Shown here piece after piece: positions 9,002 to 62,075 of a stretch of 64,000 bases of DNA. Below the pieces are notes generated by a model. It was not told the DNA's origin. It did not search any database and saw only the letters and a list, made by a program, of their open reading frames with translations. The DNA lies in sequence record MN871441.1; one strand, 5' to 3'. Numbering within the stretch: the stretch's first letter is position 1; the number at the start of each line of letters is the position of its first letter. Made by a program: the position numbers and the translations under genes.

Positions 9002-9022
9002 ATTATACCATTTCCCTAAATA
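9002..9022. promoter_or_regulatory. Back-to-back promoters: nrdA extended -10 (TGGTATAAT, minus) and late CCTAAATA (plus, 9015-9022)
   Basis: Both motifs read directly in the intergenic gap between nrdA and the endonuclease. Confidence 0.65.
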
Positions 9023-9047
9023 CTTTTAGATATTAGAGGAAATTGAA

Positions 9048-9950
9048 ATGGAAAAAATTAACTATGGTCACTGGGTAACTGACGAGCAGTTTGACCCAAA
9101 AACGGTTCTTGGTTTTGTGTATATGATTACGTTCTCCAATGGTAAAAAATACATTGGAGCGAAACGGGTTTGGAAAAACCTAAAACGCCCGCCATCCACA
9201 TACAAGAGGCAGGGTAAAACAGAATTTATTGAATCTGATTGGCGCTCGTATAGGTCCAGTTCAAACGAAGTGGTTGAACTGGAAACCAGAGGTATAGAGA
9301 TCTCAGAGATGAGGATCCTCGCCACCTATGATTCTTGGGGTAAAGTACTTCTTTTAGAATGTATGCTCCAATTCTCGCTCAATGCGTTAACCTCCGATAT
9401 ATACCTAAACAAGCAAATTGAAGGCATGTTTACGGGGGCATGTTTTGATAAAAAGGTATACGATGACGTTGCTCGTCTCGTTGCGATTGAGCAATATGAT
9501 GAGTCTATCCCACAGGTAATTGTTTACCGTGGTGGAGACCGGAGTGTTATATGTGACAAACAATCAGCAAAAGAATACATCAAAGCTGGTTGGTCTGTTG
9601 CGTCTTTACCAGAAAAATATCATCGTAAAAGTATCCCAATGGTTCCCTATACAATCAAATGTAAGGAAACTGGAACTGAATATACCATCAGTGATTTCAA
9701 AACTCAATACGAAGTTTCAAAAAAACTTGAATGTGTTGCAGGGGATCTTAGTCGGCTTCGCTCTGGTGAAATTCTGAACATAGGTTCNTACACCATGAAG
9801 ATTCAACGGGAACCCCAACGTTGGGTAAAAGACGGAGTTTCATACTACAGTACAGCAGAGTTGAAATCCGCAAAGGTTGACAAATCCGAGTGTGAACACT
9901 TCCCAGCAGAAGACCGGGAAGCTTACCGGATTAGATTGTCTAAGGCTTAA
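9048..9950 (+). CDS. GIY-YIG family endonuclease (Seg-like, free-standing) with a C-terminal extension
   Basis: GFVYMITFSNGKKYIGAK...ESDWRSYRSSS...E..Q...YLN; preceded by a late promoter and SD GAGG. Confidence 0.75.
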   Translation: MEKINYGHWVTDEQFDPKTVLGFVYMITFSNGKKYIGAKRVWKNLKRPPSTYKRQGKTEFIESDWRSYRSSSNEVVELETRGIEISEMRILATYDSWGKVLLLECMLQFSLNALTSDIYLNKQIEGMFTGACFDKKVYDDVARLVAIEQYDESIPQVIVYRGGDRSVICDKQSAKEYIKAGWSVASLPEKYHRKSIPMVPYTIKCKETGTEYTISDFKTQYEVSKKLECVAGDLSRLRSGEILNIGXYTMKIQREPQRWVKDGVSYYSTAELKSAKVDKSECEHFPAEDREAYRIRLSKA

Positions 9951-10155
9951 TAAAGCGATGCCAAGACAGCGAAAGCCCATTCAACATAGAGATATGATAG
10001 AGATGGGTTTTTGTCAAAGGGGAACGGGATCAGTGGGATTGTTACTGAAAAAGTTTTACTGTTCATCAAAAATTATCCTTATGGTTAGTTGATTACTAGA
10101 TAGTACTACATCCAAAACAGAATGTAAAAAAAAAAAAAAAAAAAAAAAAAAAAAA

Positions 10156-10185
10156 AATTTATACTTTGATTGCACTTGAAACTAA
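10156..10185 (-). repeat. 30-bp motif shared (27/30) with 34890-34919; promoter-like
   Basis: Reverse complement ttagtttcaagtgcaatcaaagtataaatt vs ttagtttcacttgcaatcaaagtataaaat. Confidence 0.75.
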
Positions 10186-58957: not shown

Positions 58958-61095
58958 TATTCTACCCTTAGCCATCTATGGGCGGTGGTTGTAGGTTGGA
59001 TCACAGAGAACGGGTTTACTGTTTCGTTTGGTCTGGTATAGACATAATCCTCTCTGTATTTCTTATAACCCGGACCACTCTCGTCTGGGTCGTATTGACA
59101 CCCACCAACAAGAACATCACCATTCGGATCTGCAATAAGCGCCTTTTCCGTACTTTTTGTTCCGGGGGTATTGTCAACCGCAAGGGTTACGTCGTTTTCA
59201 CCAAAAATACTACCAGCACTGTGTCTTGGTTGTCCGTTAATATCCAAATCTTGGTTATTCAGACCGTATATCGGATCGTTTGGATTCTGACTATTCCACC
59301 CAGCAACAACCTTACCCTCTGCCCAACGAACCCAAGTACCAATCCCCATATAGGTTGCTGGGTTGTTCGGGTTATGTGCGTTTTCGTAGATAGTACCAAC
59401 TGGATAAAACATATCAAACAGCATTGCAATAGAGTTTGCAGGAACGTTGATCAAATCGTTAGGATCTGGTTGTACTGTCTTTGGGGTTGGATTGAAAGGA
59501 TCAGAATATCTAATTTTCCCGGTCAAAGTAACAGGAACAGTATTGATATACTTTTTGTCTGTCTCTTTGATAATATCGTCAAGTTCAAGCAACGAACCAA
59601 TATCATTATTAAACCAACGAATCGTAATAACGTCTTCATGGTTGAACGGTTCGTTCACCACAATATCACGCATATAACCGTTCTCATCTTCGATAGGTCC
59701 AAAATCAACACCAGTAGGAACCCAAACACCACCATTAGCAATACAAGATTCTTGAGTTAAGCTATCCGCACCCTCACAAGTAAAAAACGGTATATCACCC
59801 TGTCCAGATTTAACCAATTGACGACCGTTGACAATCATCTCTAGAGTTTTTGGGTTAAAAGTCTCACTTGGTTGGAAGCCAAATTCGGAAAGGTTAAATC
59901 TAAATTTAGCAGACAGATCCCCAACAAACCGACGCCCTGTTTCAGAAACATAATCTACAGGAACATATTGGTCGGAATAAACCCGAATAGTCGCAGTTTC
60001 GTAAGAACTTCTATATGTAGCCAAACCGTCTAAGAAAGTTTCGATAACAACAACATCACCAGCTTCGCACGGCTTTTCTAGCTTAATGGTATATCCATCA
60101 AGGTCTGTTATTTTGCTAACACCAACATAATATGAAAATTTTGACGCGATTTTCATTTGAGCTAGAATGTCAGGGGTTTCATTCACAGAAACATATTCGC
60201 TGGTCAGCTTATCGAATTTCATTAGGTATGTTTTATCGTTATAAACACAAACCAAACGGTCTTCGTTAAGTGGTTTCTTATTAAGGTCAAATTTTATGTA
60301 TGTCTTTTTATCAGACTCTTTGGAATAAAAGGATACTATAGTATTCCCTTCAACTGTTCCAAATCTAGTTCCCTTACCAACAATAGTACCCCACCTATCG
60401 CTATCGATTTGTACCGGGTTAATATCAATCTTGGCTGGGTCTGCAACAGTCTTTTGAACAATAGACCCATAGTTTGATTCGGGACCGTATTCCTGACCGT
60501 AATAAAGAATGTTACCGCGCTTATATACGTTAATCGAGTTTCTGTTATAACCAGACGAGAATATATTTTGAAAATCGGTTTGACCTTCGGTGGCAATAAA
60601 TTCTTTTTTGGCAACAGTTGCTATGTCGTTGGATCTAATTTCACCAACATATTTACTTGGTACATAATCCCAGTTACCGGGAGAGCAATATACAAGCTCA
60701 ACGTCCATGAAATTGTTTTCTAATCTGTGTGTACCAGAAGACCCTTTGATGGTATTAAATCCACCGGGAACAAGAATTACTGGGTTTCCACCCCAAGTTC
60801 CCATTACATCACGAACACGAATAACCTTACCATAATCGGCTGGTGTTCCACTCGGAAGATTGACAGTAATACGACCGGTTGTTGTATTAATTACCCACGC
60901 CTGACCCATAATAGCCGATAGAGTTTTTGTGTGGTCGCTATATGGTTTCCATGCACCAGCAGCATGAGGAATGTTACCATCCCCCAAGTTGTAGTAAAGT
61001 TCATTAAAGTTGTCGTTTGTCTTCTGACCACCTTTTCTAAGGTAATCACCGGTTCCGTCATCAACACGATTACCAATAATAATTTGCTGTTTCAT
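58957..61095 (-). CDS. gp10: Baseplate wedge gp10 (712 aa, ~110-aa insertion)
   Basis: MKQQIIIGNRVDDGTGDYLRKGGQK, IPHAAGAWK, FYPVGTIYEN..NPATYMG.GTW. Confidence 0.96.
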   Translation of the reverse strand: MKQQIIIGNRVDDGTGDYLRKGGQKTNDNFNELYYNLGDGNIPHAAGAWKPYSDHTKTLSAIMGQAWVINTTTGRITVNLPSGTPADYGKVIRVRDVMGTWGGNPVILVPGGFNTIKGSSGTHRLENNFMDVELVYCSPGNWDYVPSKYVGEIRSNDIATVAKKEFIATEGQTDFQNIFSSGYNRNSINVYKRGNILYYGQEYGPESNYGSIVQKTVADPAKIDINPVQIDSDRWGTIVGKGTRFGTVEGNTIVSFYSKESDKKTYIKFDLNKKPLNEDRLVCVYNDKTYLMKFDKLTSEYVSVNETPDILAQMKIASKFSYYVGVSKITDLDGYTIKLEKPCEAGDVVVIETFLDGLATYRSSYETATIRVYSDQYVPVDYVSETGRRFVGDLSAKFRFNLSEFGFQPSETFNPKTLEMIVNGRQLVKSGQGDIPFFTCEGADSLTQESCIANGGVWVPTGVDFGPIEDENGYMRDIVVNEPFNHEDVITIRWFNNDIGSLLELDDIIKETDKKYINTVPVTLTGKIRYSDPFNPTPKTVQPDPNDLINVPANSIAMLFDMFYPVGTIYENAHNPNNPATYMGIGTWVRWAEGKVVAGWNSQNPNDPIYGLNNQDLDINGQPRHSAGSIFGENDVTLAVDNTPGTKSTEKALIADPNGDVLVGGCQYDPDESGPGYKKYREDYVYTRPNETVNPFSVIQPTTTAHRWLRVE

Positions 61096-61097
61096 TT

Positions 61098-62024
61098 TTA
61101 TGCCCCAATTGCATCGATAGATTTTATATATACGTCTATCGTTGACTGACTAATGTTTTTTATGGTCAGTAAAACAGAATTACCTGTGATGCTATAAGAA
61201 GCTTCAAATAAAAGGTTTTCTTCCGCTTTATCTGGTGTTTTGGTTCGCAGTCTAGCGTATTCAGTAGAATAAACTTTTGTATCTGCGGTACTGGTATTAT
61301 TTACCATCAGTAAAGTTTCGCATGATTCTTGAAGGGCACCAACGCCACGTTGAGTAACAAAGATCATGTGTTTAACCGCGTTGAATTGTGGCTTACTAAA
61401 CAAAACCACGTTTCGGTCAGCACCAACCGCGATCCCAGTAATAGTGGCGCTATATGAAGTTGCAGAGTCACCATAAATCGATTCAAGCTTATAATTCCAT
61501 TTCGAACCTGCTGGACTTGCTTCTGCTACCCATAGGGTTAATTTGAAATTGGAACGGTTTACAACCAATCTATTCCCACTAGCCCCGATGGTATCACCAG
61601 AACCACTAGTCCGAATAATCACTTCTTTACCAGCACCAAACCCCACAGAACCGTCTGTATTGACGAATTCTATACATTCCCCACCATGACCACTACCTTG
61701 AGGGAGAGTTATAGTAAGGTCTCCTGTACCGTCTCTGATAACAGATAGGTCGTGCATAGAACCAAATTCTACTGGGTTGCCAGACGGCTGTTCTGCCCCT
61801 GCATAGTATGCCCGAGTGTGTTTTTGATAATATCCAGTACCATGGAGGGTCTGAACGCGATTACCAAAACCAGAAGTCTTACCAATTCTGTAGTCCCCGA
61901 ACACGTTCCAAATACTGTTTATATCTTGGTTTAATTTTAAGCCGCCGTCATGAAGGGTATCACCGGTTCCTTCTTGACCACGGACGCCAGTATCAACTAG
62001 CTCTTTAGGCTTTTGTACAGACAT
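61098..62024 (-). CDS. gp9: Baseplate wedge / tail-fibre connector gp9
   Basis: QKPKELVDTG..GTGDTLHDGG.KLN, HGTGYYQK; CCTAAATA at 62061-62068. Confidence 0.95.
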   Translation of the reverse strand: MSVQKPKELVDTGVRGQEGTGDTLHDGGLKLNQDINSIWNVFGDYRIGKTSGFGNRVQTLHGTGYYQKHTRAYYAGAEQPSGNPVEFGSMHDLSVIRDGTGDLTITLPQGSGHGGECIEFVNTDGSVGFGAGKEVIIRTSGSGDTIGASGNRLVVNRSNFKLTLWVAEASPAGSKWNYKLESIYGDSATSYSATITGIAVGADRNVVLFSKPQFNAVKHMIFVTQRGVGALQESCETLLMVNNTSTADTKVYSTEYARLRTKTPDKAEENLLFEASYSITGNSVLLTIKNISQSTIDVYIKSIDAIGA

Positions 62025-62075
62025 TATTTTATATCCTTTATTTTATAGGGTTCACCCTTGTATTTAGGAGAAAAT

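Follow-up and report, generated by a model that had tools for sequence, protein, structure and literature searches.

The AsSzw2 window and its gene map

The window analyzed here, bases 1-64000 of the genome of Aeromonas phage AsSzw2 (MN871441.1; a record of 228419 nucleotides, nt), carries in front of its virion genes a recurrent CTAAATA element, often extended upstream by one or two cytosines, that very probably acts as the late promoter of this phage. The placement of the window on this record rests on its gp23 gene, which matches AsSzw2 with 100% identity at identical coordinates. AsSzw2 is classified in the Straboviridae, Emmerichvirinae, Ceceduovirus, and is a CC2-like relative of T4. An earlier note on this DNA, made from the sequence alone, had proposed that the late consensus has moved away from the T4 box, TATAAATA, together with the late sigma factor gp55. 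The record has no annotation, carries the flag UNVERIFIED_ORG and contains 4658 N scattered through its length; the gene map was taken from the near-identical annotated twin Assk (MH791404.1), whose start codons were projected onto the window.

CTAAATA copies upstream of late genes

The window holds 28 copies of CTAAATA on both strands, against 13.05 +/- 3.66 expected from dinucleotide-preserving shuffles, a number reached by 0 of 100 shuffles. Twenty of the copies are sense-oriented and lie 12-102 nt 5' of a start codon, and nearly all the genes behind them are orthologues of T4 late genes. The genes so preceded are gp34, uvsW, inh, gp24 (with two sites), gp23, gp22, gp67, gp20, gp19, gp15, gp13, wac, gp9, a SegE-like GIY-YIG gene, rnlB, uvsW.1 and three small open reading frames (ORFs); upstream of the early genes gp55, nrd, gp32, gp30, gp59 and dda no CTAAATA was found in the window. 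In Assk, 20 of 28 copies fall inside 92-nt upstream intervals (-100 to -8) that cover roughly 4% of the sequence when both strands are counted (binomial p 6e-18); in these intervals CTAAATA is the most enriched 7-mer and CCCTAAATA, with 11 of its 13 copies there, the most enriched 9-mer.

The canonical box TATAAATA is not enriched in the window (9 copies vs 5.8 expected, with 13 of 100 shuffles as high), and no structural gene there has a copy in the 100 nt before it, as the earlier note had remarked. The only promoter-like canonical copy in the window, at 5648-5655 (-), sits in the nrdB-nrdD gap, 58 nt before nrdD. Over the whole AsSzw2 record CTAAATA occurs 51 times, 34 times as CCTAAATA and 22 times as CCCTAAATA, and 45 of the 51 copies are in the first 107 kb, the virion-gene part. 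When NTAAATA was scored for promoter-like positions, only C was enriched in AsSzw2 (C 35/51, A 14/51, G 7/25, T 8/35); the same placement test on T4 selected A (37/64), with T at -13, and C was not enriched. The CCTAAATA and A/T-CTAAATA coordinates given in the earlier note all proved correct in a scan of the window. The consensus of most AsSzw2 sites includes a further C at -14, absent from that note, and reads CCCTAAATA.

On the minus strand the form ccCTAAATA stands at 17415..17421 (P34; 39 nt before the gp34 ATG at 17375, conserved in phage 65), 29345..29351 (PuvsW; 34 nt before the ATG at 29310, conserved in phages 65 and Aswh_1), 37898..37904 (the proximal P24 site; 23 nt before the ATG at 37874), 39763..39769 (P23, for the major capsid protein; 72 nt before the ATG at 39690), 40721..40727 (P22; 71 nt before the ATG at 40649), 43692..43698 (P20, for the portal; 29 nt before the ATG at 43662), 44258..44264 (P19, for the tail tube; 25 nt before the ATG at 44232) and 49836..49842 (P15; 26 nt before the ATG at 49809). 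The same form is found on the plus strand at 9016..9022, 25 nt before the ATG of the SegE-like GIY-YIG gene and at the same site in phage 65, at 33662..33668 (Pinh; 26 nt before the ATG at 33695), and at 34529..34535, 38 nt before ORF 34574. The last of these is conserved in phages 65 and Aswh_1, and its ORF, of 73 amino acids (aa), had no Pfam match.

The remaining sites vary in the two bases that precede CTAAATA. On the plus strand ctCTAAATA (25355..25361) lies 42 nt before a small ORF at 25404, which precedes uvsY, and caCTAAATA (29359..29365) lies 45 nt before ORF 29411; the latter is the divergent partner of PuvsW and reads tCTAAATA in phages 65 and Aswh_1. On the minus strand we found a distal variant of P24, gtCTAAATA (37945..37951), 70 nt before the ATG; P13, ctCTAAATA (51367..51373), 28 nt before the ATG at 51338, with the same variant in Aswh_1; Pwac, acCTAAATA (56661..56667), 31 nt before the ATG at 56629; and P9, tcCTAAATA (62061..62067), 36 nt before the ATG at 62024. 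The copy caCTAAATA at 42073..42079 (-), conserved in phages 65 and Aswh_1, is doubtful as the promoter of gp67 itself, because the 13 nt that separate it from the gp67 start are too short for a normal leader. At the PuvsW position Aeh1 and phiAS5 have gCTAAATA, and in the P23 alignment cccCTAAATA in phages 65 and Aswh_1 corresponds to taCTAAATA in Aeh1 and phiAS5; the P23 motif is conserved, but the entire leader is conserved as well within the subfamily, so that this alignment adds little.

Several of these places have features of their own. The SegE-like GIY-YIG homing endonuclease gene (9048-9950, +; Pfam PF19835, E 3e-30) is a lone plus-strand gene between nrdA and gp35 with its own CCCTAAATA, and phage 65 has the same layout. 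At 29345-29365, between the divergent uvsW and ORF 29411, two motifs stand back to back on opposite strands, 7 base pairs (bp) apart, as an imperfect palindrome, in which the C run (-14 to -12) of one promoter forms a G run just upstream of the other, on the latter's strand; a second back-to-back pair occurs at 75426-75447 of the record. The 230-bp gap between ORF 34574 and ORF 35030 contains, inside a stretch of 85 nt (34929-35011, -), one CCTAAATA and two canonical TATAAATA, which are antisense to the inh/ORF 34574 unit and followed by a GC-rich inverted repeat; this cluster may mark an antisense or small-RNA start, or may be due to chance. Similarly, the CCCTAAATA at 63473-63479 (-), which falls within a coding region about 385 nt ahead of the gp8 start, may be either an internal late promoter or a chance occurrence.

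Compared with Assk, the AsSzw2 record is broken in gp24 (36323-37874), gp15/gp14 (49082-50412), wac (55515-56629), nrdA (6821-8972) and gp35/gp34 (10232-17375). The breaks are local duplications, deletions and reshuffled segments; for instance, gp24 bases 218-383 are present twice and gp15 bases 150-235 are absent. Together with the 4658 N, this looks like an assembly artefact and not like biology. The intergenic promoter sites are undamaged despite these gene breaks.

Promoter architecture and late transcription machinery

Around the 34 CCTAAATA copies of AsSzw2 there is no information content between -53 and -24, so that no -35 element is visible; a weak A/T preference is seen at -23/-22, and C occupies -14 in 22 of the 34. 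At the T4 start distance, the +1 position is a purine in 26 of the 34 sites (about 76%). The information content is limited to -14 to -6, and both strands carry sites, which stand in front of late (virion) genes. On these features the AsSzw2 element is of the T4-type late-promoter architecture: it shares with T4 a single -10-like element of 8-9 bp with a TAAATA core from -11 to -6, the purine at +1 and the lack of a -35, and it serves the same late genes. It differs from T4 in having C instead of A at -12, C instead of T at -13, and a C at -14.

The proteins that act on T4 late promoters, gp55, gp33 and gp45, are all present, with their clamp-binding tails. The window opens with the N-terminal 86 aa of gp55 (2..259, -), which share 98.8% identity with the complete gp55 (183 aa) of CC2/Assk. 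That protein matches T4 gp55 (PDB 7D7C chain F) with an E value of 1.9e-32; Pfam Sigma70_r2 gives only a weak match that stays under the cut-off, as is usual for gp55. The AsSzw2 record begins within gp55, and residues 87-183, the C-terminal half, were not found anywhere in its 228 kb, which implies that the deposited genome is incomplete or wrongly closed there; residues 98-183 were read from the twin Assk/CC2, where they are 100% identical among 11 records. The co-activator gp33 (79 aa) is encoded at 18708..18947 (+; PF16805, E 6.6e-19) and ends in an LDFLF clamp-binding motif, as read in the Assk twin sequence. The sliding clamp gp45 lies outside the window, at 226188-226448 of the record (PF09116, 26.1 bits with a cut-off of 25). 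AsSzw2 therefore has a gp55 homologue, gp33, gp45 and a -10-only element, and lacks TATAAATA as its consensus; by this inventory it represents a variant of the T4-type late transcription system and not a system of another kind.

The idea that the promoter cytosines are hydroxymethylated, as they are in T4 DNA, was dropped, since no gp42-type dCMP hydroxymethylase was detected. A search with PF00303 retrieved both td and gp42 in the T4 control and only one td-like gene each in Assk and in phage 65, so these cytosines are probably not hydroxymethylated.

Late promoters of related phages

The closest neighbors of the CC2/65 subfamily, judged by gp23, are the Aeh1/PX29/phiAS5 group, with 65% identity vs 55% or less for other T4 relatives. 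For Aeh1 it was reported that TATAAATA promoters are not found, that the late promoters contain CTAAATA and that gp55 is 'substantially diverged' (Nolan et al. 2006, Virol J 3:30, PMC1524935), and a later review described the Aeh1 box as having 'a/gC at positions -13/-12 in place of TA' (Geiduschek & Kassavetis 2010, PMC2988020). A sigma factor and promoter that vary together, with C at -12, have thus been known for about 20 years in a related phage. AsSzw2 resembles Aeh1 in having a C at -12 ahead of the TAAATA core, in front of genes orthologous to T4 late genes, and in having a gp55 that has diverged from that of T4. The two part at -13, where Aeh1 has A, G or T and the AsSzw2 subfamily has C, with a further C at -14; the C(-12)TAAATA of the Aeh1 type is present in AsSzw2, and the published A/G at -13 (in our recount also T) is not.

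The counts make this difference sharp. CCTAAATA occurs 4 times in the whole genome of T4, 0 times in Aeh1 and once in phiAS5, against 31 times in phage 65, 34 in Aswh_1 and 34 in AsSzw2. Among all CTAAATA copies, C at -13 is found in 0/43 in Aeh1 and in 1/40 in phiAS5, the others having A, T or G. In promoter-like sites it is found in 25/35 in AsSzw2, 21/30 in phage 65 and 0/32 in Aeh1, and C at -14 in 22/35 in AsSzw2 and 17/30 in phage 65; in the CC2/65 subfamily C is present at -13 in about 70% of the sites and at -14 in about 60%. An annotation-free test, in which k-mers enriched upstream of greedily called ORFs were sought, returned TATAAATA for T4 as the positive control, CTAAATA for Aeh1, phiAS5 and Ahp1 (with A/T/G-CTAAATA 8-mers), and, as the highest-ranking 8-mer of both phage 65 and AsSzw2, CCTAAATA. 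Ahp1_CNU-2021 takes a middle place, with G or C at -13 and with A at -12 in some orthologous promoters.

In a search that covered the literature outside subscription journals, we found no paper on CCTAAATA or on the late promoters of CC2 and phage 65. The Emmerichvirinae-specific CC extension at -13/-14, and the gp55 changes Q108D and R109E that go with it (see below), appear to be undescribed so far. Taken together, the CCCTAAATA of the Emmerichvirinae is, on these comparisons, a further step away from T4 and not a copy of the Aeh1 consensus.

Two further observations concern individual promoters and phages. At the site orthologous to P18 (46390-46417, -), in the 3' end of gp17 and upstream of gp18, CC2-type phages and Aswh_1 have GTAAATA and ATAAATA, Aeh1, phiAS5 and Ahp1 have ATAAATA, and phage 65 has CTAAATA, so that at this one promoter the base at -12 departs from the clade consensus. 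Aeromonas phage 60AhydR15PP (Tulanevirus, NC_055747.1) had no clear enrichment of ATAAATA or CTAAATA upstream of its ORFs, only a weak one of TTAAATA/TAAATAA; this phage may have a further variant of the late promoter.

The elements as probable late promoters

We consider it very likely that this CC2-type T4 relative uses the (C)(C)CTAAATA elements as its late promoters. In the proposed mechanism, a single -10-like element without a -35 would be bound in the open complex by gp55 on the host RNA polymerase, with the assistance of gp33 and the gp45 sliding clamp, and C would take the place of A(-12), the base that is flipped into the deep pocket of T4 gp55. Some points speak against this reading: its support is entirely in silico; the heuristic that defines a placed site, that is, a promoter-like position, has a background of about 25%; and two sites, those of gp67 (13 nt) and rnlB (12 nt), are too near the start codon to serve that gene.

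These two copies, which overlap the ribosome-binding region at 12-13 nt from the start codons, would also fit a signal of another kind, acting at the RNA level or otherwise at the DNA level, for example in mRNA processing, as a translational operator or as the target of a nuclease, as would the sense orientation of the motif in 5' leaders or intergenic DNA. We regard such a non-promoter role as highly improbable, since the main sites stand anywhere between 23 and 72 nt from the start codon, in no constant relation to the Shine-Dalgarno sequence, and only one to three upstream bases differ from the T4 late promoter. Moreover, the motifs lie in orthologous places, with a purine at the +1 distance and no -35, as in T4, and the promoter inference for Aeh1 was made independently.

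Divergence of gp55

The gp55 of the CC2 type is 79.5% identical to that of phage 65, 75% to that of Aswh_1, 43% to that of Aeh1 and about 40% to that of T4, and the alignment of the N-terminal 86 aa agreed with the segment that the earlier note had quoted as differing from T4. No smaller member of the sigma family than gp55 is known, and its promoter consists of one box of 8 bp. In the T4 complex, A(-12) is flipped into a deep pocket of gp55 and stacked there on Y97, and A(-9) and A(-8) enter further pockets of the protein; alanine at N13, L54, R57, F86, H95, Y97 or T99 impairs function (Shi et al. 2021, PMC7892883; PDB 7D7C/7D7D).

The pocket residues N13, F86, H95, Y97 and T99 are conserved in all the Aeromonas phages aligned. 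R57 is replaced by Y in CC2, 65, Aswh_1, phiAS5, Ahp1 and 60AhydR15PP, and by H in Aeh1. N59R, I72V, Q100M and F103A/M are common to all the C(-12) phages, and the A(-12) set lacks them. Changes found only in the Emmerichvirinae include K56E, S61R, P94A, C102A, Q108D and R109E; the other eight gp55 proteins aligned all have R109. In the gp55 tree the Emmerichvirinae stand on a long branch, of about 1 substitution per site, and one branch (support 86/95) separates the four phages scored as A(-12) from all the C(-12) phages, a topology that would fit one origin of C(-12).

The position of the subfamily-specific changes is suggestive. In sigma-70, the base pairs immediately upstream of the flipped base are contacted by region 2.4, and gp55 residues 104-109 would fall at the region 2.4 position if Y97 corresponds to the base-stacking tyrosine of region 2.3. 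Acidic side chains commonly read cytosine, and D108 and E109 are therefore reasonable candidates as readers of C(-13)/C(-14), on what is a single evolutionary event. Bacterial sigma-70 extended -10 promoters have extra conserved bases right upstream of the -10 element, and the AsSzw2 box would resemble them, by analogy only, in its extra upstream bases, read as duplex by the helix that follows the base-flipping residues. The difference is that gp55 has no sigma region 3, and that the contact proposed here would be made by its long helix H4 (104-109), as placed by alignment.

Does gp55 discriminate between the boxes?

Other data invite an alternative account, in which the specificity of gp55 is unchanged, its -12 pocket takes A or C in many T4 relatives, and the AsSzw2 pair is not orthogonal to a T4-type gp55; the cytosines at -12 to -14 would then have been fixed otherwise, for example by selection for less likeness to host sigma-70 -10 boxes, or by drift in a lineage whose sigma factor is permissive. 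The pocket that receives the flipped base in T4 is mostly conserved in its residues, Ahp1_CNU-2021 mixes C and A at -12 across P22, P23 and PuvsW, and in the KVP40-like Vibrio phage Va3 (MK568540.2) both ATAAATA (18/31) and CTAAATA (15/30) are enriched upstream of long ORFs, at normal spacing, together with a gp55 that has the T4-like N59, F103, Q108 and R109. Some gp55 proteins may thus accept either base at -12, and C at -12 alone need not exclude a T4-type gp55. Nevertheless, we judge this account distinctly unlikely. A(-12) is at background in AsSzw2, 65, Aeh1 and phiAS5, as is C(-12) in T4; C(-13) is all-or-none between sister clades, with 0-1 vs 31-34 copies per genome, a pattern hard to obtain by drift with a permissive sigma factor; and R109 was replaced on the same branch. 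As Va3 weakens an orthogonality based on -12 only, the cytosines at -13/-14 are left as the likelier discriminators.

The most specific form of our proposal is that the gp55 of the Emmerichvirinae reads a 9-bp box, with C(-12) flipped into a remodelled pocket and C(-13)/C(-14) read as duplex by D108/E109 on H4, and that the resulting pair is orthogonal to the T4-type (TATAAATA) and Aeh1-type (non-C at -13) phages of the same Aeromonas hosts. We hold this only tentatively, as a possibility that is more doubtful than probable. Several findings on gp55 also count against the main reading, that of late promoters read by a changed gp55: L54C occurs only in the CC2-type gp55 and not in 65 or Aswh_1; R57Y, being present also in 60AhydR15PP, is not confined to the clear C(-12) phages; the gp55 of Va3 has T4-like residues at 59, 100, 103, 108 and 109, and that phage apparently uses both A and C at -12; and the residue assignments are confounded by phylogeny, as they reflect one, or at most two, evolutionary events. 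As for the co-evolved shift which the earlier note had put forward, the motif behaves in silico as the late promoter of the clade and gp55 has diverged along with it; its novelty does not stand, C(-12) having been published for Aeh1.

The history that would best account for these data begins with C(-12). The Aeh1-type phages have it too, and it most likely goes back to a single event in the ancestry of the large Aeromonas relatives of T4 (about 220-235 kb). The Emmerichvirinae (CC2, 65, Aswh_1 and AsSzw2) would then have extended the element upstream by C(-13) and C(-14), an extension that would have occurred on the long gp55 branch, with S61R, K56E, Q108D and R109E. From the sequences we infer that transcription starts at the motifs, that gp55 reads the cytosines, and which of its residues do so.

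Implications for the T4-like phages of Aeromonas

The late box is seen in three graded states, namely TATAAATA of the T4 type, D-CTAAATA (D = A, G or T) of the Aeh1 type and CCCTAAATA of the CC2/65 type, in related phages and, for two of the three, on shared Aeromonas hosts. Now that the structure of the T4 complex is at hand, such natural variants offer material on how a sigma factor with region 2 only reads DNA, with a short list of candidate gp55 specificity residues (57, 59, 61, 100, 103, 108 and 109). For annotation, the late promoters of Ceceduovirus and Ishigurovirus are best searched for with CCTAAATA, not with TATAAATA. If the proposed reading of the 9-bp box is true, the Emmerichvirinae would possess a natural 'extended' late promoter. 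Furthermore, if the specificity is tight, the sigma-promoter pairs could act as orthogonal switches for late expression, and could explain separate late programmes in co-infecting T4-like phages of Aeromonas.

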